From contig QPMI01000588.1 of the NCBI GenBank assembly GCA_004431415.1, positions 208,834 to 272,833 on the forward strand: 64,000 nt of DNA, given 5' to 3'. The notes below the pieces were generated by a model that saw nothing but the letters and a program-made list of their open reading frames with translations, ran no database searches and had not been told where the DNA came from. A program made the position numbers and the translations under genes. Shown here piece by piece: positions 15,436-53,409 of the stretch; within the stretch, counting starts at the first letter, position 1, and every line of letters starts with the position of its first letter. Source of the DNA: Cyanophora paradoxa CCMP329. Lineage: Eukaryota > Plantae > Glaucophyta.

Positions 15436-15436
15436 T

Positions 15437-19992: not shown

Positions 19993-21148
19993 ATTCTGGA
20001 GATCAAGCACCTCGTATCATTCACACGCTGAACGATAGCGCCAGTCTCGAAAATAGGCCTACAGTTAGCATCGTTCGAAAAGAACTATCCGCAGAAGCAT
20101 TTCAATAAAGACTGGGTCGCGGACCTGCAGAGCCCGCTGTGCAATTTGTGGTCGGAACGTCGACGTCGATTTTGGAGCTCGAGCTCCTCGGATGAAGAGC
20201 TTAGCACCGGTTGCGAAAACTGGCCAGCAGGAAGCGTTGATCGAAAGAGACTATCTAGAGAAGCATTTGGATGGAGACTGGGCCGCGGACCTGCAGAGCC
20301 CGCTGTGAAATCGGTGGTTGGAACGTCGATTCTGGAGATCGAGCTCCTCGTATCATTCACACGCTCAACAATAGCGCCAGTCTCGAAAATAGGCCTGCAG
20401 TTAGCATCGTTCGCAAAGAACTATCCGCAGAAGCATTTCAATAAAGACTGGGTCGCGGACCTGCAGAGCCCGCTGTGCAATTTGTGGTCGGAACGTCGAC
20501 GTCGATTTTGGAGCTCGAGCTCCTCGGATGAAGAGCTTAGCACCGGTTGCGAAAACTGGCCAGCAGGAAGCGTTGATCGAAAGAGACTATCTAGAGAAGC
20601 ATTTCGATGGAGACTGGGCCGCGGACCTGCAGAGCCCGCTGTGAAATCGGTGGTTGGAACGTCGATTCTGGAGATCGAGCTCCTCGTATCATTCACACGC
20701 TCAACAATAGCGCCAGTCTCGAAAATAGGCCTGCAGTTAGCATCGTTCGCAAAGAACTATCCGCAGAAGCATTTTCAATAAAGACTGGGTCGCGGACCTG
20801 CAGAGCCCGCTGTGCAATTTGTGGTCGGAACGTCGACGTCGATTTTGGAGCTCGAGCTCCTCGGATGAAGAGCTTAGCACCGGTTGCGAAAACTGGCCAG
20901 CAGGAAGCGTTGATCGAAAGAGACTATCTAGAGAAGCATTTCGATGGAGACTGGGCCGCGGACCTGCAGAGCCCGCTGTGAAATCGGTGGTTGGAACGTC
21001 GATTCTGGAGATCGAGCTCCTCGTATCATTCACACGCTGAACGTTAACAATAGCGCCAGTCTCGAAAATAGGCCTGCAGTTAGCATCGTTCGAAAAGAGC
21101 TATCCGCAGCAGCATTTCGATGGAGACTGGGTCGCGGACCTGCAGAGC
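19993..21148. repeat. Tandem array, 336-bp unit made of two diverged ~168-bp halves, ~3.4 units
   Basis: GACTGGGYCGCGGACCTGCAGAGC recurs at ~20110, 20276, 20446, 20612, 20783, 20949 and 21125, alternating ~166/170 bp. Confidence 0.96.
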
Positions 21149-21859: not shown

Positions 21860-21955
21860 TCCTAGGGGTGGTAAAGAGGGGTGTGGTAAAGTCAGCCCTA
21901 AGTGAGTGAAGTTGCAAGTTTACCATGTGGTAAACTTAATTCCTGGCTCCCAGTG
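21860..21955 (-). mobile_element. Possible terminus of a CACTA/CACTG (EnSpm) DNA transposon truncating the gypsy gag
   Basis: Ends ...CTCCCAGTG (CACTG on the minus strand) where GC content jumps into gag; three GTGGTAAA subterminal repeats; hairpin AAGTTTACCA-TG-TGGTAAACTT at 21916-21937. The partner TIR was not found. Confidence 0.35.
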
Positions 21956-30030: not shown

Positions 30031-33000
30031 CGGCACGCTCGGCGAAAGCACGCGCGTCAAATTCATTTTTGACACTGGCGCAATGGGAGACGTTGGCGAG
30101 AAAAAGCACATGCCGCCCGGCACGCGCTACACGGGTGTGAAGGTCCTCCGGGCCTTCCTCCACCACGCCACGATCACGGCTGAGATTGCTCATGTCGTGC
30201 TGCGCTTCGGCGACGTGTACGTCTCGCGAGCGGTGTACGTCGTCCCTGACGGCTCGCTCGGCCCGAACGCCGACATGCTCCTGGGCATCGGCACGATCAT
30301 GAGGATCGAGGGGCGGATTGACACCACCAGCTCGGGCTGGTGCCTGCACGCGCGCGACGCGCACTTCCGCCCCCACGTGATCCCTTTTCTGTGCCCGGAC
30401 AATCAAAGGGGCCTCTCCTTGTCCGGGTGCTCCGCCCCGTCGTCCTAAAGGACGCCCGCGAATGGATGGTCCGCTGCGTGTTGGACGGCCCTGCGCCGCC
30501 AGCGGACCAGGCCCCGACGCTCGCCGTCGGGCCGGCGCCTGACTCCCTGTCAGCGCTCGGGGTACTCGCGCCCCACCAGTTGCACCGCCGGCCTGCCGAG
30601 GGCGGCAGCCTGCACGTGCGACTAGTAAACCCCGCCAATGAGCCCGTCCTGCTTCCCGCTGGGGCCATTGTAGCGGTGGCGGAGGCTAATAACCTGCCGC
30701 CCGGCGACTTTGGGTTCGACCCGCCGCCCGACGACGCGTCGGCGCGCACCGTCGCCGACTCTTTCATTCGCACGCTGCGAGCCTTCTACCCTAAGCGAGG
30801 GCAAGGCTTCCGCGCGATGCGACGCCGAGCCAATCGAACGGCTGCGGCTTACACGGCAGCTGAGGGCACCACGCCGCCCCAGCACCCCGCTCCAGGGCCT
30901 ATTTTCGCGGCACCCGCCGCCCGGCAGTCCGAAGCGACTGTAGCCACTGAGCAGGAGCCTGCGCCGAGCGCGCCTCCCTTGTTCGTCCGCATGCTGCGCG
31001 ACGACGGCAGTGAGGGCGAAGACGTCCCCATTGTCACAATGGAGGGCCTCGCGCTTTGTGACGAGCCCGTGTCCTCGGACACCGACTCTGAACGCGAGCG
31101 CGAGGACGGGTACCTTGGCTGGACCTCGCCCGAAGAGCGCGAGCGCACCAGGCCCGCCCGCCGCGCTGAACGCGCCGCACGCCGCCGCGCCCACGCGGCT
31201 CGCGCTGCACGCCAGGGGGCTAACGCAGTCCCCACCAATCCCTCCGGGGATCAAATAAATCTCGCTGCCGAGGCGGCTGAGCCGCCGGCGCCCGCGCCGG
31301 GCGCGGCCGCTCGCCCGCCTGCACCGGCGCCAGCACCGCTGGAAGGCCCCGGCTGCTCTGTCCGGACAACGGAAGCGCCCGCGCCCTCCGTAGCCGAGTC
31401 CTCCGCCGCGCGCGGAAAGGACAAGGGCAAGGCGCCGCTGCGAGCCGCCCCTCCGGGCCCCGCGCCTGGCCCCTCCCACGGTGGCGCCCCGCGGGCACCG
31501 CCGGAAGCGACGGGGACGTCGTCTTCCGAAGAGGAGGAGTGGAACCGTGCACGCGCGAAGATCCCGGAATGCGGCTCGCATCCGGCGATGAGCGCTACGG
31601 AACGCGCCGAGCTAGAGGCTCTGCTGAAGCGCTACTCGCGCGCGTTCGCCGACTCGGTCACGGCCACCGAGGGCACGGCCAATCTCCTCCATTACGAGCA
31701 CGTGATCCGATTGACCTCACGGCTGCCCGTCTTCACGCCCCCGCGGCGTGTAAGCCCGCACGCCGAGGCCTTCGCCCGTGACGAAATAAAGCGGCTCCTT
31801 GAGCTGGGCCTGATCCAGCCCTCGCAAGCCGCCTATGGCTCGCCGGTCGTGCTCGCTCCTAAGAAGGACGGCACCTGGCGGTTCTGCGTCGATTACCGAC
31901 GCTTAAATGCGATCACCGAGCGCGACGTCTTTCCCTTGCCACGGATTGACGATCAGCTGGACCGCCTGCGGGGGTCCATGATCTTCTCGACCGTCGACGC
32001 GACGGCGGGATTCTGGCAGCTGCCGCTGGACCCCGCGTCCCGGCAGTACACGGCCTTTGTGGTGCCCTGGGGCCACTACGAGTGGCGCGTGACCCCGTTC
32101 GGCGTGACCAACGGGCCGGCCGCTTTCTCGCGCGCCGTGACGGCCATCCTCGGCCCCCTGCTCACGACTTGCGTCACCGCGTATATCGACGATATCACGG
32201 TGTTCTCGCCAAGCGTGCCCCAGCACCTGCTGGACCTCGAGGCCCTGTTCCGCGCTATCATGCCGGCGAACTTGCGCCTGAAGCCCTCCAAGTGCCGCTT
32301 CGGGGTGGCGGAGGTGGCCTTGCTCGGGCACCTCGTCTCGGCCGAAGGGATCCGCCAGGACCCCGCGAAGCTGGCGTTCATTCGCCAGTACCCGCCGCCT
32401 GCGAACGCTGACCAATTGAGGTCGTTCCTGGGCTTGGCTGGGTACTACCGGCGTTTCGTGAACGGGTTCGCCCGTGTCACCCACCCGCTGCAGCGCCTGC
32501 TGCTTCGGGACGCCGCGTGGCAATGGACCGAGGTCCACCAAGCCGCCTTCGAGGCGCTGAAGGCCGCCCTGCTCGAGGATCTGGTACTTGGGTACCCGGA
32601 TTTCGAGCGGCCCTTCATCCTGTCGACCGACGCGTCGACGTACGCCATCGGCGCGATCCTGTCGCAATCCGATGGCGGCTCGCCCGCCCGTGAGCGGCCC
32701 ATCGCGTTCATCAGTCGAACGCTGGCGCCCGCTGAGCGGAATTACACCGCCACCGAGCTCGAGTGCCTAGCGGTTGTATGGGCAATAAAGTACTGGCGGC
32801 ACTTCCTCCTGGGAGGGCCCCAGTTCCTGGTCCGGACGGACCACCAGGCGCTCCAGTGGTTGCGCTCGCGCGAGGCGACCTCGGGAAGGCTGGGACGCTG
32901 GTCCCTCCTCCTGCAGTCCTACGACTTTGTCGTAGAGTACCGCGCGGGGCGCAACAACGGAGGGCCCGACGCCTGCTCGCGGCCCCACTGAACCACCCGG

Positions 33001-33888
33001 TTCTCGCGCCCGGCGGCGCCGACGGCAGCTCGGCCGCGCCCGACGCGCTGGCCGGCGCCACGGGGCACGGCGTGCCCCAGCCCGGCGACCTTGACGAGCC
33101 TCTGCCGCTGTTTGCAGTCGCTCACGCCGCCGAAGGCGCTGCGGAGGCCCGGGTAGCGGTGGAGGCCCCGCCGGGCCCCCGCCTGACCGAGCTCGCCGAC
33201 GAGCCGGCCGAGGCCGCGCCGCCGGCCCCCGCGTCAGCGTCCGAGCCCGCCGAGGCCGCGGCGCCCGCGGCTCCGCCCAGCCGGGCGGAGATCCTCGTCG
33301 CGCGGCGACAGGCCCGCCTCCGGCGCCAGCTCGCCTTCGAGGGCGCTCCCGCCGCAAGGCGGGACGTCCAGCCCGCCCAGGGGCCGCGTCCGCGTCGGAC
33401 GCGCGCGCCGCCTGAGGCTTTCCAGGAGGGCTCTGACGACGAGCCCGTCCCCCTGCCCGCGCGCGCGCCCCGAGCCGCGTCGGCGCGCGCCGAGGCTGAG
33501 CCCGCGGGGCCCCGGCGCCGCCCGAGCCCCGAGCTCCTGCCGCGGGGCAGGAGGCGCCCCTGCCAGCGGCGCCGGCGCTGCCGCAGGCCGGTCCGCCCAC
33601 TCGGCGCGGCCAGAAGCCCACCACCTGGGCTGAGGTGCGCCAAGGGTGGACGAGTGGCACCGCCTCGCCGTCGCGCAAGGCCTGCCCCCGGCCCCGCGCT
33701 CTCCGAGCCCGCCGCCGGCGCCCGAGTCCGACCCGATGGAGCTGGGCTCCGATGGCGAGGCCGCGCCGCCTGTGCCCGAGCCTGAGGCCCCGCGCCAGGC
33801 GCAGGAGCCCGAGCTCGACGAGGACGGGTTCCCCGTGGCCCTCCTCGAGCACGTACGTCGTCGGTTCCCTCTAGGGCCGCGGCGCTAC
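30031..33888 (+). CDS. pol: Pol, part 1: aspartic protease, reverse transcriptase, RNase H, then a low-complexity linker (frameshifted)
   Basis: VKFIFDTGA (DTG at 30071) and MLLGI; SPVVLAPKKDGTWRFCVDYRRLN; PFGVTNGPAAF; YIDD (32182-32193); LRSFLGLAGYYRRF; FILSTDAS; ELECLAVVWAI; TDHQAL; DACSR. Confidence 0.96.
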
Positions 33889-34205
33889 TCGGGATTTGCG
33901 CTCTCAATGCGTAAATCGAGTTTTGCGCCGACGGAATGCGAACAAAGAAGACCGTAGCCGAGCGCCAGGCACGAAAGAGCTGAGCGACTCGCTAGCCGCG
34001 GAAGCGGCGCGAGGCGAGCACGGGATTAGCAGCAGGCTGCTGCGAGCGCCCCGCAAGGGACTAGCTGAGCTAGCCGTTGGGCCGAGCCGGCGGGCTTGAA
34101 GCCGCCGAGCTCCGGGGGGTACGCTGATTCGGGGTTTCCCTTCACGCCCAGCTTCGCTCGCGGCCGCCCCAGGCCACGAAGCGACCAGCGGCGAAGCGAA
34201 ATCGC
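33889..34205 (+). repeat. Split direct repeat A1
   Basis: Identical by eye to 44344-44660. Confidence 0.96.
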
Positions 34206-34829
34206 CACAGCCAGCACTGCAGTCACTCCTAAACAGCCCTGTCGGACCGGCGGCCGCACTTCTCGGCCGTCCCTCCAATTGCACAGAGCTGACCAACTCT
34301 GCAGCACCACGGCTCGCCATAGCTGCAGTGGAGCGCGATCCCGCGGCAGCAACTGCGCATGCCTCGATGGCTGGCCGGCGCAAACCCTGTTCCCAGCGAT
34401 CCTCCCGGAATCGGCCTCGGGCCCCGATTCACGCTTGAATCTGGTTCCTTACTGCCGTGCCGGTACGTGGATTCACGTCCGGGCCCGCCCGCCACGCTCG
34501 CATCCCGCGCGCGCTGGCTATCCCGGGGCCCACCGTCAGTCCGCGGCCGCCGGCTTGCCTATACACTCTATATAAGCGTGTATTGAGACCCGCCGCGCGA
34601 TTCCTCCGGTTCCCTGACCAATTCCTGCACGCATGCTCCGGAGCTCCTCGGCGCTCGCACCGGACGTCGACACCGCCGCTGTGCCACGCCGGCGGAGCTC
34701 GCGCAGGACTGCCCCGGCCTGCTGGCGCGCGCGCTGCAGACCCACCGCGAAGTCGGGGCTTGGATCGTGCCTTACGCGTGATCCACCGACGGACGGTGCC
34801 CAGCCGCTCGCGCGGCTCGGGGAGGCGAC

Positions 34830-36110
34830 GGAGTACGGCTCTCGCGTGCGCCTCGCGCTGTGGGACGGCCCGCGTGCGCCTCGCGCTGTGGTCCCTGTAC
34901 TCGGAGTTCGGAGGCCGCGCGCGACTCTCGCTGTGGCCCGATCCCCCGGCGGATTCCGGCCGCGACCGCGGCCGGCGAACTTCCACCAGGAGCACGGATC
35001 TCGCGAGCGCCTCGCTGTGAGATGGGCCCGCGTGCGTTCGTCGCTGTGGGCCCCCGTGCAAGGAGTTCCGGGGCCGCGTGCGCCCCGCTGTGGCCCCAGA
35101 CCGCTTCAGCGGCACCAGCCGCTCCCGCGGCCGGCGAACTCCCAACCTGGCCTTCGAATTCGACTCCCGCGTGCGCCTCGCGCTGCGGGACGGCCCGCGT
35201 GCGCCTCGCGCTGTGGGCCCCCTACTCGGAGTTCGGAGGCCGCGCGCGACTCTCGCGGCGGCCCGCTCCGCCCCCGGCGGACCCCGGCCGCGCCCGCGGC
35301 CGGCGAACTTCGACCAGGAGCACGGGTCTCGCGAGCGCCTCGCTGTGAGATGGGCCCGCGAGCGTTCGTCGCTGTGGGCCCCCGTGCGCGGAGCTCCGGG
35401 GCCGCGTGCGTCTCGCTGTGGCCCCAGAGCTTCACCCCGGAGTACGGCTCTCGCGTGCGCCTCGATCGCTGCGGGACGGCCCGCGAGCGTGCGCGCTGTG
35501 GGCCCTGTACATATATATATATACTCGGAGTTCGGAGGCCGCGCGCGACTCTCGCTGTGGCCCGATCCGCCCCGGCGGACCCCGGCCGCACCCACGGCCG
35601 GCGAGCTTCCACCAGGAGCACGGATCTCGCGAGCACCTCGCTGTGAGATGGGCCCGCGAGCGTTCGTCGCTGTGGACCCCCGTGCGCGGAGCTCCGGGCC
35701 GCGTGCGTCTCGCTGTGGCCCCAGATCTAGAGCTTCACCCCGGAGTACGGCTCTCGCGTGCGCCTCGCTCGCTGCGAGACGGCCCGCGAGCGTGCGCGCT
35801 GTGGGCCCTGTACTCGGGTTCGGAGGCCGCGCGCGACTCTCGCTGTGGCCCGATCCGCCCCGGCGGATTCCGGCCGCACCCGCGGCCGGCGAACTTCCAC
35901 CAGGAGCACGGATCTCGCGAGCGCCTCGCTGTGAGATGGGCCCGCGAACGTTCGTCGCTGTGGACCCCGTGCGCGGAGTTCCGGGGCCGCGTGCGTCGCG
36001 CTGTGGCCCCAGAGCTTCACGCCGGAGTACGGACCTCGCGTGCGCCCCGCTGCGAGACGGCCCGCGAGCGTGCGCGCTGCGGGCCCCGGACTCGGAGTGC
36101 GTTACGCTGC
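34830..36110. repeat. Tandem array of ~290-325-bp units (~4 copies) built from CGCTGTGG-containing subrepeats
   Basis: TACTCGG(A)GTTCGGAGGCCGCGCGCGACTCTCGC recurs at ~34898, 35224, 35522 and 35811. Confidence 0.9.
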
Positions 36111-36719
36111 GGACTATAGCTACGACTCTCGCTGGCGCGCGCGCTGCGAGTATTAGTCGGCCCGCTGGCGCGTCTCGAGCTCGCTGCGGACTAGCCGCTA
36201 GCGCTAGCGCTGCTGGCGCGACCGCTACAGCCTCGCGATCGATCGCGATCGCAGAGTGTTTTGTTTGTTTTTGGTCAATTCTAGTCGATTCAAGGATTGA
36301 CTCGACCTTAAAACAAAAACAAAAACAAAACAAACAAAAACAAAACAACGGACGTACCCGTTGTACCGGCCGGACTCCGGACTCCGGAGCCGCCGGACCC
36401 GCGGTACCGGTCCCGCGCCGCGCGGTCTCACTGCCGCAGTGCCAGGCCGCTGAGGCGGGCACTTCCGGGGATCCGCTGCCGCAGTGCCGCCGCTGCGGCG
36501 CCGCACGGCATGCGCAGTCTGCAGTGGCAGTACAGCCGCAGTGCCGCAGTGCGAGCTCGAGTCGGCCGGCGCCCGCAGCTGCAGTTGCCAGGCTGGCGCT
36601 TCCGCTACCGCAGTGCTGCCGCTGCCCCAGTGGCGCGTTACGCTGCGGACTACGGTCCCCGCTTGCGCTCTAGATCTCGCTGCGAGTCGGCCTGCTGGCG
36701 ACCTTCCGCGCATCCGCGC

Positions 36720-39700
36720 CGCACCCTTGCGCAACCCGGGCCCCCGCACCGCAGCTCGGCTCGCCGCCGCCGCCGGACCTGCCTGCGCAGGGCGGGCCGG
36801 CCGCTGGCCCGCCTGCGGCACTCCCCGGCTGGAGCCCAGGGCTCCACCTCCGTCCCGAGGTCCGAAAACGACCTCGCGCGGCCCCGCACCGCCACGCCAC
36901 CCGCCGCCGCCGCCTGACCTGCTTGCGCGGGGCGGGCCGGCCGCTGGCTCGCACGCAGCGCTCCCCGGCTGGAGCCGCTGAGCCCAGGGCTCCGCCTCCG
37001 TCCCGAGGTCCGTCACGGCCTCGCGCGGCACCCGCGCCGCCGCTCGACCCGCCGCCGCCGCCTGACCTGCTTACGCAGGGCGGGCCGGCCGCTGGCTCGC
37101 CTGCCGCGCTCTCCGGCTGGAGCCTTGGTCTCCACCTCCGCCCCGAGGTCCGTCACGGCCTCGCGCGGCCCCGTGCCGCCGCTCGACCCGCCACCGTGGC
37201 ACCGCCGCCTGACCTGCTTGCACAGGGCGGGCCGACCGCTGGCGCGCCTGCGACGCTCCCCGGCTGGAGCCCAGGGCTCCACCTCCGCCCCGAGGTCCGA
37301 AAACGACCTCGCACGGCCCCGCCCCCCGCGCCACCCGCCGCCGCCGCCTGACCTGCTTGCGCAGGGCGGCCGACCGCTGGCTCGCCTGCGGCGCTCTCCG
37401 GCTGGAGCCCAGGGCTCCGCCTCCGCCCCGAGGTCCGTCACGGCCTCGCGCGGCCCCCGCGCCGCCGCTCGACCCGCCGCCGCAGCCTGATCTGCTTGCG
37501 CAGGGCGGGCCGGCCGCTGGCTCGCCTGCCGCGCTCTCCGGCTGGAGCCCTTGGGCTCCACCTCCGCCCCGAGGCCCGTCACGGCCTCGCGCGGCCCCCG
37601 CACCGCCGCTCAACCCGCCACCGTGGCACCGCCGCCTGTCCTGCTTGCGCAGGCGGGCCGGCCGCTGGCTCGCCTGCGGCGCTCCCCGGCTGGAGCCCCG
37701 GGCCCCACCTCCGCCCCGAGGTCCGAAAACGACCTCGCGCGGCCCCACGCCCGCGCTCGACCCGCCGCCGCCGCATAACCTGCTTACGTAGGGCGGGCCG
37801 GCCGCTGGTGCGCATGCAGCGCTCCCCGGCTGGAGCCCAGGGCTCCACCTCCGCCCCGAGGTCCGTCACGGCCTCGCACGGCCCCGCGCCGCCGCTCGAC
37901 CCGCCGCCGCCGCCTGACCTGCTTGCGCAGGGCGGGCCGACCGCTGGCTCGCCTGCCGCGCTCTCCGGCTGGAGCCTTGGTCTCCACCTCCGCCCCGAGG
38001 TCCGTCACGGCCTCGCGCGGCCCCGTGCCGCCGCTCGACCCGCCACCGTGGCACCGCCGCCTGACCTGCTTGCACAGGGCGGGCCGACCGCTGGCGCGCC
38101 TGCGACGCTCCCCGGCTGGAGCCCAGGGCTCCACCTCCGCCCCGAGGTCCGAAAACGACCTCGCACGGCCCCGCCCCCCGCGCCACCCGCCGCGCCGCCT
38201 GACCTGCTTGCGCAGGGCGGGCCGACCGCTGGCTCGCCTGCGGCGCTCTCCGGCTGGAGCCCAGGGCTCCGCCTCCGCCCCGAGGTCCGTCACGGCCTCG
38301 CGCGGCCCCCGCGCCGCCGCTCGACCCGCCGCCGCAGCCTGATCTGCTTGCGCAGGGCGGGCCGGCCGCTGGCTCGCCTGCCGCGCTCTCCGGCTGGAGC
38401 CCTTGGCTCCACCTCCGCCCGAGGCCCGTCACGGCCTCGCGCGGACCCCGCACCGCCGCTCAACCCGCCACCGTGGCACCGCCGCCTGTCCTGCTTGCGC
38501 AGGGCGGGCCGGCCGCTGGCTCGCCTGCGGCGCTCCCCGGCTGGAGCCCCGGGCCCCACCTCCGCCCCGAGGTCCGAAAACGACCTCGCGCGGCCCCACG
38601 CCCGCGCTCGACCCGCCGCCGCCGCATAACCTGCTTACGTAGGGCGGGCCGGCCGCTGGTGCGCATGCAGCGCTCCCCGGCTGGAGCCCAGGGCTCCACC
38701 TCCGCCCCGAGGTCCGTCACGGCCTCGCACGGCCCCGCGCCGCCGCTCGACCCGCCGCCGCCGCCTGACCTGCTTGCGCAGGGCGGGCCGGCCGCTGGCC
38801 CGCCTGCGGCGCTCTCCGGCTGGAGCCTTGGGCTTCACCTCCGCCCCGAGGTCCGTCACGGCCTCGCGCGGCCCCGCACCGCCGCTCGACTCGCCGCCGC
38901 CGCCGGACCTGCTTACGCAGGGCGGGCCGGCCGCTGGCTCGCATGCGACGCTCTCGGGCTGGAGCCCTTGGGGCCCCACCTCCGCCCCGAGGTCCGTCAC
39001 GGCCTCGCGCGGCCCCGTGCCGCCGCGCGACCTGCCGCCGCCGCCTGACCTGCTTGCGCAGGGCGGGCCGACCGCTGGCTCGCCTGCGACATTCGCCGGT
39101 TGGAGCCCTTGGGCCCCACCTCCACCCCGAGGTCTGAAGCGGCCTCGCGCGACCCCCGCGCCGCCGCCCGACACACCGCTGCCGCCTGACCTGCTTGCGC
39201 AGGGCAGGCCGGCCGCTGGCTCGCCTGCCGCGCTCTCCGGCTGGAGCCCAGGGCTCCACCTCCGCCCCGAGGTCCGTCACGGCCTCGCGCGGCCCCGCGC
39301 TGCCGCTCGACCCGCCGCCGCCGCATAACCTGCTTGCGCAGGGCGGGCCGGCCGCTGGCTTGCATGCAGCCCTCCCGGCCGGAGCCTTGGTCTCCACCGC
39401 CGCCCCGAGGTCCGTCACGGCCTAGCGCGGCCCCGCGCCGCCGCTCGACCTCCGCCGCCGCATAACCTGCTTGCGCAGGGCGGGCCGACCGCTGGCTCGC
39501 CTGCGGCGCTCCCCGGCTGGAGCCCAGGGCTCCGCCTCCGCCCCGAGGTACGTCACGGCTTCGCGAGGCCCCGCGCTGCCGCTCGACACGCCGCCGCCGC
39601 CTGACCTGCTTGCGCAGGGCGGGCCGGCCGCTGGCTCGCACGCAGCACTCCCCGGCTGGAGCCCAGGGCTCCACCTCCGCCCCGAGGTCCGTCATGGCCT

Positions 39701-42700
39701 CGCGCGGCCCCGCGCTGCTGCTCGACCCGCCGCCACCACATAACCTGCTTGCGCAGGGCGGGCCGACCGCCGTCTCGCCTGCGGTACTCTCCGGCTGGGG
39801 CCCAGGGCCCCACCTACGCCCCGAGGTCTGTCACGGCCTCGTGCGTCCCCGCGCCGCCGCTCGACCCACCGCCGCCGCCTGACCTGCTTGCGCAGGGCGG
39901 GCCGGCCACTGGCTCGCCTGCCGCGCTCTCCGGCTGGGGCCCAGGGCTCCACTTCCGCCCCGAGGTCCATCACGGCCTCGCGCAGCCCCGCGCTGCCGCT
40001 CGACCCGCCGCCGCGCATCACCTGCTGGCGCAGGGCGGGCTGGCCGCTGGCTCGCACGCAGCGCTCCCCGGCTGCGCCCAGGGCTCCACCTCCGCCCCGA
40101 GGTCCGTCTCGGCCTCGCGCGGCTTCGGGCTGCCGCTCAACCCACCGCCGCCGCATGACCTGCTGGCGCGGGGCTGGCCGGCCGCTGGCTCGCATGCAGC
40201 GCTCCCCGGCTGGAGCCCAAGGCCCCACCTCCGCCCCGAGGTCCGAAAACGACCTCGCGCGGCCCCGCACCGCCGCGCCACCCGCCGCCGCCGCGTAACC
40301 TGCTTGCGCAGGGCGGGCCGGCCGCTGGCTCGCACACAGCGCTCCCCGGCTGGAGCCAGGGCTCTACCTCCGCCCGAGGTCCATCACGGCCTCGTGCGGC
40401 CCGCACTGCCGCTCGACCAGCCGCCGCCGCAAAACCTGCTTGCGCAGGGCGGGCCGTCCGCTGGCTCGCATACAGCGCTCCCCGGCTGGAGCCCAGGGCC
40501 CCACTTCCGCCCCGAGGTCCGTCACGGCTTCGCGCGGCCCCGCGCTGCTGCTCGACATGCCACTGCCGCCTGACCTGCTTGCGCAGGGCGGGCCGCTGGT
40601 GCGCATGCAGCGCTCCCCGGCTGGAGCCCAGGGCCACACTTCCGCCCCGAGGTCCGTCACGGCCTCGCGCGGCCCGCGCTGCTGCTCGACCCGCCGCCGC
40701 CCCAGAACCTGCCTGCGCAGGGCCGGCCGCTGGTGCGCATGCAGCGCTCCCCGGCTGGAGCCCAGGGCTCCACCACCGCCCCGAGGTCCGCCACGGCCTC
40801 GCGCTCCCCTGTGCTGCGCTCGACACGCCGCCGCCGCATAACCTGCCTGCGCAGGGCGGGCCGGCCGCTGGCTCGTCCGCAGCGCCCCCCGGCTGGAGCT
40901 CAAGGCGTTACCACCGCCCAGAGGTCCGTCACGGCCTCGCCCGACCCCGCGCTGCCGCTCGACCCGCCGCCGCCGCATACCCTGCTTGCGCAGGGCGGGC
41001 CGGCCGCTGGCTCGTATGCAGCGCTTCACGGCTGGAGCCCAGGGCTCCACCTCCGCCCCGAGGTACGTCACGGCTTCGCGAGGCCCCGCGCTGCGCTCGA
41101 CACGCCGCCGCCGCCTGACCTGCTTGCGCAGGGCGGGCCGACCGCTGGCTCGCCTGCGACATTCGCCGGTTGGAGCCCTTGGGCCCCACCTCCACCCGAG
41201 GTCTGAAGCGGCCTCGCGCGACCCCCGCGCCGCCGCTCGACACACCGCTGCCGCCTGACCTGCTTGCGCAGGGCAGGCCGGCCGCTGGCTCGCCTGCCGC
41301 GCTCTCCGGCTGGAGCCCAGGGCTCCACCTCCGCCCCGAGGTCCATCACGGCCTCGCGCAGCCCCGCGCTGCTGCTCGACCCGCCGCCGCCGCATAACCT
41401 GCTTGCACAGGGCGGGCCGGCCTCTGGCTCGCATGCAGCGCTCCCCAACTGGAGTCCAGGGCTCCACCTCCGCCCCGAGGTCCGTCATGGCCTAGCGCGG
41501 CCCCGCGCTGCCGCTCGACCCGCCGCCGCCGCATAACCTGCTTGCGCAGGGCGGGCCGGCCGCTGGCTCGCATGCAGCCCTCCCCGGCCGGAGCCTTGGT
41601 CTCCACCGCCGCCCCGAGGTCCGTCACGGCCTAGCGCGGCCCCGCGCTGCAGCTCGGCGTACCGCCACTGCCTGACCTGCCTGCGCAGGGCGGGCCGGCC
41701 GCTGGCTCGCCTGCCGCGCTCTCCGGCTGGAGCCCTTGGGCTCCACCTCCGCCCCGAGGTCCGTTCACGGCCTCATGCGGCCCTGCACCACCACTCGACC
41801 GCCGCCGCCGCATAACCTGCTTGCGCAGGACGGGCCGGCCGCTGGCTCGCATACAGCGCTCCCGGCTGGAGCCCAGGGCTCCACCTCCGCCCCGAGGTCC
41901 GAAAACGACCTCGCGCGGCCCGCACCGCCGCGCCCCGCCGCCGCCGCCTGACCTGCTTGCGCAGGGCGGGCCGACCGCTGGCTCGCCTGCGGCGCTCTCC
42001 GGCTGGAGCCCAGGGCCCCGCCCCCGCCCCGAGGTCCGTCACGGCCTTGCGCGGCCCCGCGCCGCTGCTCGACCCGCCGCCGCCGCCTGACCTGCTTGCG
42101 CAGGGCGGGCCGGCCGCTGGCTCGCATGCCGCGCTCTCCAGCTGGAGCCCAGGGCTCCACCGCTACCCCGAGGTCCGTCACGGCCTCGCGCGGCCCCGCG
42201 CTGCAGCTCGGCGTACCGCCACTGCCTGACCCGCTGGCGCAGGGCGGGCCGGCCGCTGGCTCGTCCGCCGCGCTCTCCGGCTGGAGCCCAAGGCTCCACC
42301 GCCGCCCCGAAGCCCTTGACGGCCTCGCACGGCCCCACTCCACACCCGGCTTGCCGCCGCCGCCTGACCTACGGGTGCAGGGCGGGCCGGCCGCTGGCCC
42401 GCCCACCGCGCTCCTGCTGGAGCTCAAGGCTCCGCCACCTCCCGAGGTCTGCAGCGACCTCGCGCGGCCCGGCGCCGCCGCCCAGCTCGCTGCCTCCGCC
42501 TGATTGGCTGGCACAGGGCGGGCCGGCCCCTAGCCCGCCCGCGGCCGTCGGACGCTTCCTGGCTGGAGCTCAAGGCTCCGCCACCGCCCCAGGGCGGGCC
42601 GGCTGGTGGACCGCGCGCAGCGCCTCCTGCGGTAGCTAAAAGCTCCGCCGCCGCCCGAAGGTCCGTAGCGGCCTTGCGCGGCCCGCGCGGCCGCTCGACC

Positions 42701-43370
42701 GCTACCGCCGTCGGACCTACTCGCGAAGGGGCAGGCCGGTCGCTGGCTCGCCAGCAGCGCTCTCCTGCTGGAGCTCAAGCCTCCACCACCGCCCCGAGGT
42801 CTGCAGCGACCTCGCACGGCCCCGCACTGCCGCTCGGCTCGCCGCCGCGCCTCGCCTGCTTGCGCAGGGCGGGCCGGCCTCTGGCTCGCCCGCGTCGCCC
42901 CCTGCTGGAGCTCAAGGCTCCTTCGCGGCCCCGAGGTCCGTCACGACCTCGCGCGGCCCGCGCCGCCGCTCGACCCGCCGCCTCCGCCCGACCTGCTGGC
43001 GCAGGGCGGGCCGGCCCCTGGCTCGCCAGCCGCGCTCTCCTGCTGGAGCTCATGGCCCCATCACCGCCCGGGGTCCGTCACGGCCTCGCGCGGCCCCGCG
43101 CTGCCGCCGCCTCGCCTGCTGGCGCAGGGTGGGCTGACCGCTGGCTCGCCCACGGTGCTGTCCCACGGGCGCTCCAGGCCCTGAGGCCCCGCGACTGCTC
43201 CGCGGTCTTATGCGGCCCCCACGCCTCCGCGCGGCGCGCTTCCGCCGCCTAACCTGCTTGCACAGGGCAGGACGGTGGTGGGCTCACTTTCGGTGCTCAC
43301 CGGCTGGGATGGTTTTAGATTCCGCCGCGGCCCGAGGTCCGTAACGGCCTCGCGCGACTTCACGCCGACG
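36720..43370. repeat. GC-rich minisatellite, ~139-147-bp monomer, roughly 47 copies, diverging toward the right end
   Basis: GGAGCCCAGGGCTCCACCTCCGCCCCGAGGTCCGTCACGGCCTCGCGCGGCCCC...ACCTGCTTGCGCAGGGCGGGCCGGCCGCTGGCTCG at ~140-bp period. Confidence 0.97.
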
Positions 43371-43786
43371 CGCAGTGCGACCGCCTTGCCCGCCCTCCAC
43401 CCGTAGCGCGCCCCTGGCCCGCACGCCCAGCATGACTTGTCGGCGGCGGGGATCTGGCGGCGCAACTATCAAGCGCCGCCCCGGTTCGTCGACTGTCCAT
43501 AGGGGTACGACGAGAACCCCCCAGCCTTCTGTGCCGGCTCGTTCCCTCGGGCTTCTTGGCCCGCCCCGGCCCCATGTTGTTGTCCGAATTCACGCTCTCT
43601 GCCCGTCCCTCCTACAGCGCAGTGCGCTGGGGGATAGGGGCTCAGCGTCCGAGACACGTTGGGGTGGCGGGGGAGGAGGAAAGAGAGGGGGGGGGGGGGC
43701 AGGAGGAGGGTGGATCAACCCTCGCCCTCTTGATCACTTTTGTCCTTATGTATGCTATTCTGGCTGGCTGTGACCTGACTCTTGTT

Positions 43787-44343
43787 TGGTAGGGGGTACT
43801 GCATTCGTGCTGCGTTCGCTACGCTCACCCCGCGGCCTCCGGCGGCGGTACCCGGCTTCGGATCCCCGAACCCGGAAGAAACCGCGTACCCCTCCCCGGG
43901 GTACGCCGTTCGCCCCAACCGGCCCCACAAGGCGCGGCCCGAGGCCGAACGCGTACCCCGGAGAGGGGTACGGCGTCAGAGCGGCCCCGATCAAGTGTAC
44001 CCCGAGCGGGGTACCACGATCGGCCCCGCGACGGCCCCGAGCGGAGTACCCCCGAGCGGGGTACACCGTCTCGACCCGCAACGGCCCTCCCCGGGGTACA
44101 GGCGCCTAGCACGCTTACCCCGGAGAGTTCTTGTTCCGGAACTCGCAAGGGCGAGGCCGGAATGGCATACGGCGATCCGCCCTGGTCGATCGCCAACGTA
44201 TTATGATACGTGGTTCCCGGGAAAGCAGCCTTGAGCTGCCGTACCTCAGGGCCCAACCCGATGCGCTATCCCGTGCATCTAGCTAAGTAGTGTCAGGCGT
44301 AAGATAGCTAGGTCTTCTGCATTCGAATGAAGCGAGGCGTAAA
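43787..44343 (+). repeat. Split direct repeat B1
   Basis: Matches 45303-45857 apart from a few homopolymer indels. Confidence 0.96.
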
Positions 44344-44660
44344 TCGGGATTTGCGCTCTCAATGCGTAAATCGAGTTTTGCGCCGACGGAATGCGAACAA
44401 AGAAGACCGTAGCCGAGCGCCAGGCACGAAAGAGCTGAGCGACTCGCTAGCCGCGGAAGCGGCGCGAGGCGAGCACGGGATTAGCAGCAGGCTGCTGCGA
44501 GCGCCCCGCAAGGGACTAGCTGAGCTAGCCGTTGGGCCGAGCCGGCGGGCTTGAAGCCGCCGAGCTCCGGGGGGTACGCTGATTCGGGGTTTCCCTTCAC
44601 GCCCAGCTTCGCTCGCGGCCGCCCCAGGCCACGAAGCGACCAGCGGCGAAGCGAAATCGC
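44344..44660 (+). repeat. Split direct repeat A2
   Basis: Copy of 33889-34205, directly fused to B1 (GCGTAAA|TCGGGA). Confidence 0.96.
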
Positions 44661-45302
44661 GCCCGCCCACCTCCCCGCGATTTTTCCTTCCGGGGCGCCG
44701 AACCTCGCCACCCAGCGAGCCCCGGCGCCGCGAAAAGTTCGCGCAAAAAGGCAATGCATACGGCGACCAGCGCCAGCGTTCGCCGAGGGTATTATAATAC
44801 GTGGTTCCTTGCCGTCTCCTGTGCACACGGTTCCGGATGTTACTCCCGCTCGGTGCCGGCCACCAGCGCGGACGTGGTCGTGCACAGCTGATCCGTGGTA
44901 ATTTACAATGGTTCGTCGAAGATTCGGGCACGAACCGCGCAGACTCGGTGTACCGGTCGTCATTCGTGTTTCACGCGCGTCCGCTGGGCCCACTTGTGCC
45001 GGGCCGGGGTCCAGCGCGCCCCAAGAAACAGTCGCGCGGCTTCGTGGAGAATCTCGAGTTTTCCCCGCTGGGTTTTACCCTGTTTCCTCTGGACCCGTGG
45101 GTGCCGAGCCGGGGTCCAGCGCGCATGACCGTTACGCGGTTTTCCCGCGGTAACTTGCTGGTTTTCGAGTCTGCCGCCCCGGCGCGGGGGAGACTTCGCG
45201 CATGATTCGGAGTCCTGTTGGTTTTTGATGAGCTCGGTTGTCGTACGTTGTACGACTCCTTGGTCTCATGGTCGTCTGCGGACGACGGGCACGCTACGCG
45301 TG

Positions 45303-45857
45303 TGGTAGGGGGTACTGCATTCGTGCTGCGTTCGCTACGCTCACCCCGCGGCCTCCGGCGGCGGTACCGGCTTCGGATCCCCGAACCCGGAAGAAACCGC
45401 GTACCCCTCCCCGGGTACGCCGTTCGCCCCAACCGGCCCCACAAGGCGCGGCCCGAGGCCGAACGCGTACCCCGGAGAGGGGTACGGCGTCAGAGCGGCC
45501 CGATCAAGTGTACCCCCGAGCGGGGTACCACGATCGGCCCCGCGACGGCCCCGAGCGGAGTACCCCCGAGCGGGGTACACCGTCTCGACCCGCAACGGCC
45601 CTCCCCGGGGTACAGGCGCCTAGCACGCTTACCCCGGAGAGTTCTTGTTCCGGAACTCGCAAGGGCGAGGCCGGAATGGCATACGGCGATCCGCCCTGGT
45701 CGATCGCCAACGTATTATGATACGTGGTTCCCGGGAAAGCAGCCTTGAGCTGCCGTACCTCAGGGCCCAACCCGATGCGCTATCCCGTGCATCTAGCTAA
45801 GTAGTGTCAGGCGTAAGATAGCTAGGTCTTCTGCATTCGAATGAAGCGAGGCGTAAA
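45303..45857 (+). repeat. Split direct repeat B2 (right terminus)
   Basis: Copy of 43787-44343. Confidence 0.96.
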
Positions 45858-47816
45858 GAGGGGCCCGTCGCGCCCCTGCCGCGCGACCTGCGACCGCCTG
45901 AGGCCCCGCGCCCGGGCAAGACGCCCCGCAAGGCGGACAACCCGCGCCACTGGCGCTGCGGCCCGCCGCTGTACCCTCACCAGGACGACCCTGATGAGGG
46001 GCCCGAGGGCGGCGCCCCGGCGGCGTCGTCCTCCGCGGCCGCGTCGACCGCCGCCGCGACGGCCGGCTCCTCTGAGCCGCCGGCCGCCTCCGAGGCGCCC
46101 TCAAGCGGCGACGCCGGCTCGAGTGGCGGCCCGGCCGCAGGCCTCGAGCGAGAGGTCCTCTCGTCCAGCGCTATCGCCCCCGGCCTGAGCTGGCGAGGTC
46201 CGAGACCGCCGCAAGCCGCGCTTGCTCGAGCTGGTCCAGGACACTTGGGATTGCGCTCCGCCGCCTTCCCTCGACGGGCCCTTGCCGAGACCCTGCGGCA
46301 CATGTTCCCTGCCCGGCGAGTCAGGCTGCTCGCCGCGCAGAAGGCGGACCCGCTGTGCCGCAAGCTGTTCTCCTGGCTAGAGAATGGCGTGAACGAGGCC
46401 CGCTGCACGCGCGCCTCTTGCCACACGGGCGACTGCTACCTCTGCAGTCAGGCCAAGGCGGCCTTCGTCGGATTCGCTGGGAAATTCGACGTGGACACCG
46501 ACGGCGTGCTTGTCCGCCGCCCGGTCGCGCCTCACGGCCGCTTCGTGCCCGTCCTGCCTGAGTCTGGCAGGACGCGTCCTGTACGCGTACCACGATGGTG
46601 GGGCCACCGCGGCGCCTCGATCGTCGCCCGCCGGATCCTGCTGAGGTTCTGGTGGCCGGGCATGCTCGCGGCCGTAGCCCGCTACGTGCGGAGCTGCCCT
46701 GCTGCCAGTTCGCCAAGGCTGTGAAGCCGCGGCGAACTGCGATCGCAGTCATCGAGGCGAGGGCCGGAATGACTTGTGGCAGGTGGACGTGTTCCACCTC
46801 GACCGACGCCGCGCGGCAACCGCTATTTGGTCGCCTGGGTGAACGCGTGGGACAAGTACACGCGGCTGTACCAAAGGCCGACCTGGACGGCTGGTCCATG
46901 CTCGAGATGGGCCGAGACTTCGTCTCGAATGAGGGCGTGCCGCTGCGCCTCCTCATGGAAACGGGTCCAGCCTGAAGGGCGGCCCGTTCAACGAGTACTT
47001 CCGGAAGCTCGGGACTCGTTTCATTACGCCGCGGCGTACCACCATTCGACGAATGGGCTGGTAGAGCGGCTGGGAGGCGTCGTGAAGACGCTGCTCCACG
47101 CGGCGTGCCGCGCCGAGCGCGAGCCGATGCACGAGTGGACCAGCACGTGCACGAGGTGCAGCTGGCGCTCCGCACGACGTGCACGCGCCACGGGCTACTC
47201 GCCCGCGCTCCTGCACTGGGGCACGAGCTCACGCTGCCCGCGACGTGCGCTTCGGGGTCGAAATGCTCGACACCCTTAGCTACGCCGACTACGTCGCGAC
47301 CGTAGTGCGCGCCGCGAAGAGCCGCGATGACGCGGTCCGCGAGCACCGCCGCTGGTACCGCCGCCAAATGGTGCACCGGACGGGTGACCTGCCGGACCGT
47401 CGCCGCTTCGAAGTGGGGCGACAAAGTCCTGTGCTGGCTGGGCGACCGTGACAAGGGGTTGTTTAACTCCTGGGTCGGCCGTTCACCGTCATGGACGTGC
47501 ACCCGGGCGGGTAACGTACGTCGTGCGCGGCCTGGCCCGGCCCTACGGCGCCGTGGGCGCTGTCCGCCAGAAGGCCCGCGACACCCGCGAGACGATCGTG
47601 CACATCGATTGCATGATCCCGTTCCGATGCGCGATGCGAACGCGCCCGCGCGGCCGGCCCGAGGGCGGCCGCGGGCGGCGGGTGCACCGGGAGCCGCGGC
47701 CGCAGCGCGGCGGCCCGGCGGAGCAGCATGAGGAGCTGGCTCCGAGCCGCGTCCCGGCCCCACAGGAGGCGAGGACAGAGAGCGGCCGCGCCTGCAACTG
47801 CGCAGCGCGAGAGTGA
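45858..47816 (+). pseudogene. pol: Pol, part 2: linker and integrase (H2C2 finger, rve core, GPY/F-like tail), heavily frameshifted
   Basis: LLAAQKADP; GHRG...RILLRFWWPGMLAAVARYVRSCP; PTPRGNRYLV; AAYHHSTNGLVER; ATGYSPALL; TIVHIDCMIPF. Confidence 0.9.
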
Positions 47817-50535: not shown

Positions 50536-51318
50536 CCGTAAAACACTTAAGTAATGCGGGCACTTAAGTAATGCGGTCCCGAAATAATGCGTTTTCCGCT
50601 GGCAAAACGCATTATTTCGGGACCGCATTAATATCGAAGCGCTCAGCCGGCGCTAAGAAAACTGCGGTATGTACCCCCCTCACGCAGCCAGAAGGCTTCT
50701 TTTTGTTCGACTGCCCGTCTCGACCCCGGTCGGCTTTAGTGATTCCTTTGACTGTCCTTTTGCCTGCTCTTGATCCGCCTGCTCCGCCTCCTGTGTCCTC
50801 CTCGACCTTGTGCCGTAGCTCTGCCCTTTCGCGTCGTCCTGCTTCGCCTCCGCCTCCGCGTCGTCTTGTTGTTCCTCTTACTTGTCTGCTTCCTGTTATT
50901 TATCTTTCTCAAATTTGTCCTCCGCTTCTTAGTGATGTAATTCCTTCCGATATTGATGGTATCTCTAGCTCTGGCTCTTCTTTGTGTCAGTCATCCTCTG
51001 TCCCTAGATCTGCTCGATTTCTCGTCTCTTCTCGATCTGTCTCGAGCTCTGTGTCTTTTCTTTTTTATTGTCGTTTTTGGCTCTTTGTCTTCTCTTTCTT
51101 CGTGCTCTTGTCTTAGTTATTTTGCTTTTTTGTCTTTAGGCCCCCTGGGCAGCCCCCGCAGTGCTGGTGTCTAGAGACTGTGGCCGGTAATTCACCAAAA
51201 AAAAAAAATTCAAAACGCATTAATTCGGCGGCGCATTATTAACCGTACTGGGGGTCCGGGTCCAAAAACGCATTAATATTACTTACAATTACCGGCGCAT
51301 TACTTAAGTGTTGTACGG
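50536..51318. mobile_element. MITE A, Tc1/mariner superfamily (pogo/Tc2-like CCGT ends), TA TSD, carrying a non-LTR fragment
   Basis: TA|CCGTAAAACACTTAAGTAATGCG ... CGCATTACTTAAGTGTTGTACGG|TA; internal CGCATTA repeats. Confidence 0.88.
50705..51208 (+). mobile_element. 5'-truncated poly(A)-tailed non-LTR element fragment inside MITE A
   Basis: Colinear with 54155-54330 plus 55106-55444; ends GGCCGGTAATTCACC(A)12. Confidence 0.8.
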
Positions 51319-51635
51319 TAGTATCATACGCGCGCGTGACGGCGCGTCTAGATCTGCCGGAGCTTCGAAATGTCGAGTCGCGACGGTAACCCTACCCGGG
51401 GCCGGTCCCTACGTAACGGGTATACCGTAGTACGTACCCTAGTACCGTGTAACACTTAAGTAATGCACGGCGTTGCACGCACTTAAGTAATGCGATCCCA
51501 AATTTAAATTAATGCGTTTCCCGCTAGCGCTGGCAAAACGCATTAATTTAATAATTTTGGACCGCATTAATATCGAAACGCTAAGAAGCTACGTTATGTA
51601 CCCCCATAACACAGCCAAGATCTAGAAGCTTCAAA

Positions 51636-52434
51636 TCGGCCTTGGGGGAAAGGAGAGGCCCTTAGGTCTGTTGGTCACTTGTCACAAAATTTTAGAAAGC
51701 GAAATTCGTATTTTTGAAGACACCTACTACCCCATTTTAGACCCTGGGGAGCACGATGGTCCGGCCCGTTTTCCTATGAGAGGCCTCTAATGGGCAGTAA
51801 CAGCACGTCGAAAAGCATCGAAAAGCATTTTCACGAAAAGCGCAAATAACATTGGTCGTCCGAGTCGAAATTTGAAAATTATTAATTTCAAGAGACCGCA
51901 CCCCATTCGCTAGGAAATAGTTTCCAAATTAACGGAGCCCCACGGGGCCGGCCAGCAAATTTGTATGAGACAGAGTCGATGTGTGCCACGAGGTGGGTTT
52001 TAAATATACTTGATGCGTTAGTTGAAAGATTATCAAAATAAACAATTTAGACAGAGCCTTATTACTGCGAATTACATTCAAATGATTCATAGATTATTAT
52101 TAACCACCTCCAAAAAGCGCCGAAAGTCGTTTTCAATAACTTAGTAAGCTGAGACGACCAATGGCCCAGGCAATGGGCCCCTCGGGACCTGTACTCGGTA
52201 CAATTGCGGCCGATTGGGCTCCGCATCGATATCTGTACCCTTGCGACACAATTTTGTACCCTCTCACTTGAGTGTGTACCCTTGCCGAGTGGACCCCCTG
52301 TTTCTCCTCCCCCCTCCGGGATCCCCCGTAACCGCGCGCGGTTGCGGGCCCCCGTTTAAAAACAAAGAGCTGCCACCCTCACGCCTTGAAGCCCCAAGAC
52401 CCAAGGCCACTCCTGCTCCGCAGGGACTCGCTTG
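51636..52434 (+). mobile_element. Non-autonomous Helitron2/Helentron-like element, copy 1
   Basis: 5' TC and 3' CTTG, inserted between A and T with no TSD; hairpin CCTGC-TCC-GCAGG (52412-52424) 10 nt from the 3' end; asymmetric inverted repeat GGCCTTGGG (51638-51646) / CCCAAGGCC (52400-52408); second copy at 54331-55105. Confidence 0.75.
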
Positions 52435-52449
52435 TTTAAAACGCATTAA

Positions 52450-53093
52450 CTCTTTGTTTTTTTGAGAGACTACGGTGGGGCGAACCCCCCGTATACGTAG
52501 GTAGTGATATTAAGGACAACAAAGCAATCACAAATCAAAGATACAGTAAAGTAGCACAAAATAGAGGGATCACGAGAAGGGACACGGCCAGATCTAGAAG
52601 AACGCAAAAGATAAGGAGAACGAGCACGAGGAGAAGGAGTAGAAGAGCTCAAGGACGTCGACGCAGAAGTACTAGTCACACTAGAACGACGAGGAGCACG
52701 GGGACGCAGCGAATAAGGAGAACGAGCTCGAGCACGAGGAACTACAGTCGAAGACGAATTCGAAGATCTAGACGTCGACGAAGACGACAAAATAGAGCTA
52801 ACAGCAGAATTAGAAGACGTAGTCGCAGGAGGCAGAGGCGGCAGAACAGTAGGAGAGGCGAAACGTAGGACACCACTAGAAGGGAGAGTCGACGTCGAAG
52901 CTGGCGGAGTGTCTAAACGGAATCGAGATTGTAGAGTTGGTAAAACAATGGACGGCTGAAGACTAATCTGAGGAACTGAGGACGACACGAGGAAAGGGGC
53001 AGAACTCGGATTCAGACTCGGAGTCGGCAGTATAAGAGGAGGGGCAAAACGCAAGCCAGTAGTGACAGGGAAGGCAGACGATGGGGCTGAACC
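52450..53093 (-). mobile_element. 5'-truncated non-LTR element fragment (second family) with a 9-bp TSD
   Basis: Flanked by ACGCATTAA (52441-52449 and 53094-53102); A-rich tail on the minus strand; pyrimidine-rich body. Confidence 0.7.
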
Positions 53094-53409
53094 ACGCATT
53101 AATTCGGTACCGCATTAATATCCATTGTAGGGGTCGGGGTCCAAAAAACGCATTAATTATAATTTCTGGCGCATTAATTAAGTGTTACACGGTAGCTTTA
53201 GCTATTTATATATATAGCTATACTATGATAGTCTGATTCAGTGATCATGGACTCTACATCTGATCATCGAGTCTGATCGAGTCTCCGAGGCTCGGCTCTG
53301 ATCATCGAGTCTGATGTACATTTTGACAAAGAATCAAAAAACAATTCGTATAAGAACAGAAGTACCCCAGGTAGTGTCTCGAATATAGTGTCTCAGTGTT
53401 TAAAATTTA

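Follow-up and report, generated by a model that had tools for sequence, protein, structure and literature searches.

A split-direct-repeat element within a gypsy pol gene

We analysed a window of 64,000 nucleotides from the genome assembly of the glaucophyte Cyanophora paradoxa CCMP329 (GCA_004431415.1, contig QPMI01000588.1, positions 208,834 to 272,833 of the forward strand; all coordinates below are those of the window), in which a segment of 11,969 bp at 33889-45857 interrupts the pol gene of a Ty3/gypsy retrotransposon. The segment is ordered A1-interior-B1A2-spacer-B2, with A and B each present twice, and BLAST of the termini against the window together with pairwise alignment bore this order out to the base. 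The parts of the element and the host sequences on either side of it are as follows.

30340-33888, + strand: host Ty3/gypsy pol with the reverse transcriptase domain RVT_1 and the RNase H domain RT_RNaseH (Pfam E 5e-31, 8e-39), then a linker up to the insertion point
33889-34205, + strand: A1, left terminal repeat, 317 bp, 100% identical to A2; its first bases, TCGGGA TTTGCGC, correspond to junction box 1 from its spacer through its right arm, and the whole of box 2 follows (33909-33928)
34206-34830, + strand: leader, unique and non-coding, 625 bp, GC 0.69, not repeated elsewhere in the element or in the window; its overlapping open reading frames (ORFs) have no Pfam match
34831-36100, + strand: tandem array 1, ~4.2 units of 288-328 bp, 82-91% alike
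36101-36741, + strand: unique segment with an AT-rich island, between arrays 1 and 2
36742-43116, + strand: tandem array 2, a 139-bp satellite, with a degenerate tail to ~43426
43427-43786, + strand: unique segment preceding B1, containing a polypurine tract
43787-44343, + strand: B1, 557 bp, with four hairpins and a 54-bp motif
44307-44413, no strand assigned: stem-bubble-stem hairpin of ~100 nt over the B1/A2 junction, in which box 1 pairs with box 2
44337-44383, + strand: a tandem pair of 20-bp palindromic boxes at a distance of 27 bp, both made up of two 7-nt arms around a 6-nt spacer
44344-44660, + strand: A2, the internal copy of A, right after B1 (located by BLAST)
44661-45302, + strand: spacer, non-coding, 642 bp, GC 0.63, its ORFs without Pfam match
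45303-45857, + strand: B2, right terminal repeat, 555 bp; its terminal GCGTAAA is the left arm of box 1
45858-46721, + strand: continuation of the host pol linker and the Integrase_H2C2 zinc finger (~46602-46700; Pfam E 6e-8)

The two copies of A are identical over their full length, and B1 and B2 are 99.1% identical by BLAST; in the pairwise alignment of the B copies there is no substitution at all, the mismatch consisting of only four 1-nt changes in homopolymer length. Both copies of B start with TGGTAGGGGG, at 43787 and 45303, B1 adjoins A2 directly (44343/44344), and the 642-bp spacer fills the gap between A2 and B2. The element therefore carries split direct repeats, with A1 equal to A2, B1 equal to B2 and B1 abutting A2, and the sizes given in a first-pass annotation of the sequence for A1, B1, A2, spacer and B2 (317, 557, 317, 642 and 555 bp) match ours exactly. 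That annotation also took the near-identity of the copies to imply recent transposition. This is reasonable, as paired repeats of 872 bp without a single substitution are compatible with a young insertion, but it hinges on the share of A1 and B2 that is rebuilt from B1A2 in each cycle, which makes the repeats a weaker clock than long terminal repeats (LTRs).

The host's reverse transcriptase domain and its RNase H domain are located in an ORF at 30340-32988 and the integrase zinc finger in the frame starting at 45858, and it is this domain order (reverse transcriptase, RNase H, integrase) that identifies the host as Ty3/gypsy. The insertion point thus lies between the RNase H and the integrase zinc finger of pol. 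The flanks read ..CGCTAC/GAGGGG.. and there is no direct repeat of any length around the element, in agreement with the earlier statement that it lacks a target-site duplication (TSD). With the 11,969 bp removed, 81 + 288 codons form an open frame that shares the phase of the upstream ORF containing RVT_1 and RT_RNaseH. The claim that deletion restores the host pol frame consequently holds locally; since stops and frameshifts occur in the host pol upstream of 33646, what is restored is not one uninterrupted polyprotein. Further upstream, a 1904-aa ORF of the gypsy host (21906-27617, + strand) contains a zinc knuckle (aa 272-287) as the only feature recognised by Pfam.

Evidence for an uninterrupted version of the site came from proteins and from short reads. 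The downstream host ORF had only two protein matches, both EukProt models. One of them, tig00021254_g19732.t1 (P0001), is 100% identical to the window and is the window's own gene model; the other, tig00020555_g10963.t1 (P0002), is paralogous and joins homologues of the left flank (to 33840) and of the right flank (from 45930) contiguously, which fits an uninterrupted paralogous gypsy site; a search for contigs encoding P0002 yielded none. At the nucleotide level, the stretch 43500-46300 is present in 14 DNA-type public runs from one organism and different studies, and we aligned the Logan contigs of four runs to 43150-46500. The public runs were used as contigs only, contig depth is not copy number, and the RNA status of a run is a guess. 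Two X1 contigs, in which a diverged left flank ending in ..GCGGCGCTAC runs straight into 45858, are the uninterrupted site in paralogous gypsy copies. The empty site predicted at first pass, CGCTAC/GAGGGG, was accordingly found both in contigs of paralogous gypsy copies and in the paralogous gene model, and the insertion is precise to the base, with neither duplication nor deletion of the target.

The contigs also reproduce the joins from A to the leader (as loose ends at 44660), from A2 to the spacer and from the spacer to B2. In an X15 contig, from a run guessed to be RNA, the end of B at 45857 is followed by 153 nt of unrelated sequence, which fits another insertion site. An X7 contig departs from the spacer 23 nt after A2, and variant starts of A before 44364 are found in X1 and X7; the divergence and the variant starts point to related sub-families. 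Both the second flank past the end of B and the variant termini are seen in contigs only, with no complete second copy. In the contigs, A and B have several times the word depth of the unique interior and the spacer; contig word depth was discarded as a guide to copy number.

Two further observations concern these contigs. An extra base relative to the window is present in the short-read contigs at a dozen or more homopolymers in 43150-46500 (for example at 43496, 44913, 44971, 45018, 45343, 45498 and 46284), and these 1-base insertions make residual long-read indel errors likely in this repeat-rich part of the assembly. Such errors may be behind the B1/B2 differences and some of the gypsy pol frameshifts. 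An X15 contig covers 44704-44909 and then, after slightly variant sequence, enters a run of A (window 44704-44921; 17 letters only), and this run near 44921 could mark polyadenylation in the spacer of a variant copy or could be an A-run of the genome itself.

A non-coding interior with two satellite arrays

Tests of 32 ORFs inside the element gave no match to a Pfam family, there was no coding bias (GC was flat across codon positions in the 15 ORFs checked, from the A, B, spacer and leader regions), and Rfam and tRNA scans found neither an Rfam family nor a tRNA in the element. Protein searches found no homologues of the ORF inside B or of a 677-aa ORF over array 1, and when the longest ORF of the spacer was compared with 1.84 billion protein representatives, only the window's own gene model matched. 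The unique parts sum to ~2.3 kb in four pieces, too little for a reverse transcriptase or a recombinase. A tyrosine recombinase is not encoded in the element, nor are reverse transcriptase/RNase H or a methyltransferase-like domain, the only nearby reverse transcriptase/RNase H being that of the interrupted gypsy host; the first-pass annotation, which had seen no coding motifs for reverse transcriptase, RNase H or tyrosine recombinase, anticipated this result. The element is non-coding and must be a non-autonomous derivative, as it encodes no recombinase and has no unique segment long enough for one.

Two thirds of the element is satellite. The arrays total 7.6-8.0 kb, in keeping with the ~8 kb in two tandem arrays of ~300-bp and ~140-bp units described at first pass. 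The main block of array 2 (36742-42539) repeats the 139-bp unit 41.5 times, shows a higher-order period of 415 bp and is followed by a variant block of 3.8 units of 137 bp (42590-43116) and the degenerate tail; the array is C-rich on the + strand (C 0.47, G 0.32), and the median identity of its units to the reference unit is 87%. Within the 64-kb window neither satellite is present outside the element, and nothing else in the window is similar to the element.

Several structured or biased sequences are found in the remainder. The AT-rich island between the arrays contains a hairpin (36257-36332) that pairs a T/G-rich arm with an A/C-rich arm (single-stranded DNA fold z = -3.4) and an (AAAACA)n run at 36310-36348. 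The polypurine tract is 55 nt long (43660-43714) and ends 72 nt upstream of B1. The four hairpins of B1, of the form GTACCCC-N4-5-GGGGTAC, make 43886-44064 a strongly structured domain (RNA fold z = -5.75), and their pattern has 7 matches in the window against 0 expected. The 54-bp motif is common to B (44165-44217) and the spacer (44756-44808) and has two conserved blocks, one of which is a TATA-like palindrome, GTATTATAATAC in the spacer copy, followed by ACGTGG.

The spacer also contributes to a gene model. The model tig00021254_g19732.t1 (44838-46721) is chimeric, as its short first exons lie in the spacer (ATG at 44838; 45014 to ~45099) and are spliced over the rest of the spacer and B2 to the integrase part of the gypsy host (45921-46721). 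The model stems either from an annotation error or from a read-out transcript whose start is immediately downstream of the spacer's TATA-like motif. The element that feeds it should be masked before genes are annotated.

The palindromic junction between B and A

At the junction, the 7 nt that end B and the 13 nt that begin A make up a 20-bp imperfect palindrome, GCGTAAA-TCGGGA-TTTGCGC (box 1), and 27 bp downstream there is a copy with a different 6-nt centre (box 2). The boundary between B and A, at 44343/44344, coincides with the boundary between the left arm and the spacer of box 1; core-type tyrosine-recombinase sites are cut at the boundary of left arm and centre. The box pattern has 5 matches against 0.16 expected, all of them at A starts or at the junction, and we regard the pair of boxes as a candidate recombinase site. 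The exact 39-nt junction pattern was absent from the metagenome contigs searched.

In the predicted junction hairpin, a 7-nt loop (44357-44363) lies between the paired boxes, and the outer stem is formed by the end of B and positions 43-69 of A. Its single-stranded DNA fold has an energy of -25.5 kcal/mol and z = -3.2, with z = -2.6 for the other strand, and in an unbiased scan of the unique parts of the element the junction windows ranked 3-4 of 211, only the hairpin-rich domain of B ranking higher. A trinucleotide common to junction and target, as in DIRS1, was considered as well and is not present in the flanks.

A probable TOC1-type retroelement of the DIRS order

Split direct repeats in the order A1-B1-A2-B2 are the defining feature of the PAT/TOC/kangaroo and Ngaro elements of the DIRS order, which insert without a TSD (PMC4157794, PMC8547959, PMC3266345), and the earlier recognition of the present layout as a hallmark of PAT, Ngaro and TOC1 elements is in line with these sources. 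TOC1 of Chlamydomonas reinhardtii is a protein-less, non-autonomous element of the same order, derived from TOC3 (PMC9940879, PMC5613634), and an internal array of 76-bp repeats is named in the title of Day & Rochaix 1991, as cited in PMC3623635. The Cyanophora element likewise has tandem arrays in a non-coding interior, which extends from A1 to B1A2, and a short unique spacer ahead of B2. We therefore consider it probable that 33889-45857 is a member of a family of non-coding, non-autonomous retroelements that have split direct repeats, belong to the DIRS order and occur in multiple copies, the C. paradoxa counterpart of TOC1. It would then be a clear-cut addition to the known TOC1-type design rather than a kind of its own. 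The first-pass interpretation is right in kind, mobilisation in trans and dispersal of satellite arrays being its more speculative parts.

The likeness to TOC1 is one of design. Both elements end in half repeats, and towards the right end of each a full B+A unit is followed by a short unique spacer and then the closing half-repeat. TOC1, from a green algal host, is ~5.7 kb long, whereas the glaucophyte element is about twice that at 12.0 kb, so that the first-pass description of it as unusually large stands in comparison with TOC1 and only with TOC1; in place of a 76-bp array, two thirds of it is satellite with 139-bp and ~300-bp units. Both are non-coding and hold an internal tandem array, and TOC1 is multi-copy (PMC9940879, PMC5613634 and, for the array, the title cited in PMC3623635), as the Cyanophora element would be.

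PAT-like elements, TOC3 and kangaroo share the A1-B1-A2-B2 repeats and the TSD-less insertion (PMC4157794, PMC3266345), but they encode gag, reverse transcriptase/RNase H, a methyltransferase-like domain and a tyrosine recombinase. As none of these coding domains is left in the Cyanophora element, it cannot be assigned to the PAT or the Ngaro superfamily. Ngaro elements have the structure A1-[ORFs]-B1A2B2, occur as GC-rich insertions in other mobile elements and leave isolated AB units in genomes (PMC8547959); unlike the Cyanophora element, with its lack of ORFs and its 642-bp spacer between A2 and B2, they are autonomous (reverse transcriptase, RNase H, tyrosine recombinase) and ~6 kb long. 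DIRS-1 of Dictyostelium integrates without a TSD and requires for retrotransposition an internal copy of its junction, the ICR (PMC7192593), so that in both elements the end-to-end junction is stored internally, as the ICR in the one and as B1A2 in the other. DIRS-1 differs in its inverted terminal repeats and in a proposed 3-bp identity of junction and target (PMC3266345), of which there is none at the Cyanophora insertion. LARD and TRIM elements are also large non-coding retroelements that are mobilised in trans and at times contain tandem repeats (PMC7004042), but they have complete LTRs at both ends, a primer-binding site and polypurine tract, and TSDs of 4-6 bp, which the Cyanophora element does not.

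According to the DIRS model (PMC7192593, PMC3266345), the element would be transcribed and copied to cDNA by the reverse transcriptase/RNase H of an autonomous tyrosine-recombinase retrotransposon in the same genome, and the internal B1A2 would be the template that links the end of B to the start of A. The recombinase of this partner would then exchange strands at the palindromic box of the junction, cutting at the boundary of the left arm and the 6-nt spacer, with a target that would require little or no homology and hence would not be duplicated. Both tandem arrays would be passive cargo, and their lengths might drift via slippage, unequal exchange or template switching. We infer from this scheme that the element would depend on its partner for both reverse transcriptase and recombinase.

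Several observations weigh against this reading. The 'retro' in the name is drawn wholly from the architecture of the element. No reverse transcriptase or recombinase partner with these termini was seen in the 64-kb window, in protein searches with the ORFs of the element or in a search of metagenome contigs for the junction pattern. Among the Logan contigs listed, none bridges the join of the flank to A1 or of B1 to A2, and the 6.4-kb length of array 2 is that of the assembly and lies beyond what short contigs can check. The runs guessed to be RNA yielded only a few low-depth contig pieces, possibly DNA carry-over, and no promoter is evident upstream of A1, the TATA-like motifs sitting in B and the spacer. 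Finally, the target and the 6-nt centre of box 1 have only GGG in common, with no clear homology between junction and target; such weak homology is unusual for classical tyrosine recombinases and unlike the 3-bp identity proposed for DIRS1 (PMC3266345).

Of the alternatives, a mobile circle that exists as DNA only, excised and integrated in double-stranded form by a trans-acting tyrosine recombinase at the junction boxes and with no RNA step (Crypton-like or an integrating extrachromosomal circle), would account for the precise, TSD-less insertion and for a palindromic core-type site at the junction. It would also do without transcription or reverse transcription, for neither of which there is direct evidence, and long tandem arrays are more easily carried as DNA than via reverse transcription. 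However, each sequence would be present once in a simple integrated circle, and the additional B1A2 inside the element, over and above the terminal A1 and B2, corresponds to the need of retroelements that rebuild their ends and is the defining trait of PAT, Ngaro and TOC elements (PMC4157794, PMC8547959); Cryptons have not been described with split direct repeats, and the 55-nt polypurine tract upstream of B1 also argues against a DNA-only element, which we consider unlikely. Slightly less probable again is a rearranged ordinary LTR retrotransposon with B+A as its LTR, in the form of two non-autonomous elements arrayed in tandem or by recombination, with truncation at both ends. It is true that B begins with TG, that B+A forms one 874-bp unit in the middle with a polypurine tract 72 nt upstream of B1, and that the contig depth of A and B is more than twice that of the spacer, as solo units would give. 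Yet both truncations would have had to occur at the identical internal B/A point, and at a palindromic box at that; there is no TSD, there are no TG..CA ends (A ends in ..ATCGC), no sequence resembling a primer-binding site follows A1 or A2, half units stand at the ends, and 72 nt is the distance that separates the polypurine tract from B1. In addition, the two regions that would be 'internal' (9.6 kb and 0.64 kb) are unrelated except for the 54-bp motif, and the empty site shows a clean single insertion. The first bases of B, TGGTAG.., were rejected as a tRNA primer-binding site, the 3' end of the implied tRNA being unlike one, although no dedicated search was made.

Collapse or mis-joining of repeats in the PacBio assembly could in principle mimic an insertion, given that the region is highly repetitive, that it has many 1-nt homopolymer gaps relative to the short-read contigs and that the array length is assembly-based. 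We think this very improbable, because independent Logan contigs from different studies reproduce the A-to-leader, A2-to-spacer and spacer-to-B2 joins and because the ends of the element coincide to the base with the empty site in paralogues. There is next to no chance that the segment is a non-autonomous Helitron: it does begin with TC and lacks a TSD, but it ends in ..GCGTAAA rather than CTRR, has no 3' subterminal hairpin of the Helitron type and is inserted between C and G rather than A and T, and split direct repeats are not a Helitron feature. The tests of termini, TSD and repeat layout led us to drop Helitron, Crypton and ordinary LTR element alike.

Within the reading as a DIRS-order retroelement, we tentatively raise a more specific possibility, to which we give rather low credence, namely that the two-box hairpin architecture is the cis site of DIRS-order integration, on which the recombinase of the partner would perform a 6-nt staggered, homology-independent exchange or would act on a folded single strand. 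As the target shares no more than GGG with the 6-nt centre, any staggered exchange must tolerate heterology. Heterology-tolerant staggered exchange would resemble that of conjugative-transposon integrases, and action on a folded single strand that of integron integrases. If the proposal is correct, there should be a second class of insertions with ends moved by 6 nt, starting with TTTGCGC and ending with the 6-nt spacer past GCGTAAA. The protein-less family would then define a minimal cis set (A, B, spacer and leader; ~2 kb), and the integration step of tyrosine-recombinase retrotransposons, long untested, would become directly testable.

Genome context and other repeats in the window

To our knowledge, non-autonomous tyrosine-recombinase retroelements have hardly been described beyond TOC1, and in the searchable literature we found no description of any in glaucophytes. 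The main interest of the present one is its precisely defined junction site. With the filled site and an empty paralogue known to the base, and with no protein of its own, the element is a compact natural substrate for studying the cis needs of a DIRS-order recombinase and reverse transcriptase. C. paradoxa's PacBio assembly comprises 99.94 Mb with a GC content of 67.6% and is 29.4% repeats, with 11.5% unknown repeats (10.1101/674762, PMC6704402), and families like this 12-kb element may be part of the latter. As a general point, large non-coding retroelements mobilised in trans can carry tandem repeats that seed satellites (PMC7004042), and the element may illustrate how kilobase-scale satellite arrays can move to new loci within a mobile element.

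Other repeats were noted elsewhere in the window. Positions 1-9732 are occupied by a tandem array of a 506-bp unit (~19 copies, 96-97% identity, GC ~0.54) that runs off the left end of the window, and just upstream of the gypsy gag ORF there are ~3.5 copies of a ~336-bp tandem repeat (19978-21148; 95-97% identity). Direct repeats of 309 bp (9958-10266 and 15437-15745; 99.4% identity) bound the stretch 9958-15745 and look like the LTRs of a 5.8-kb LTR element. The lower-GC stretch 50705-55444 contains a cluster of direct and inverted repeat pairs of 177-448 bp with 88-97% identity, such as 52002-52435 with 54762-54330 (inverted) and 50880-51205 with 55105-55444 (direct). Near the right end, an ORF on the - strand (62342-63193) has an F-box domain (PF12937, E 2e-10) and is probably part of a host gene.

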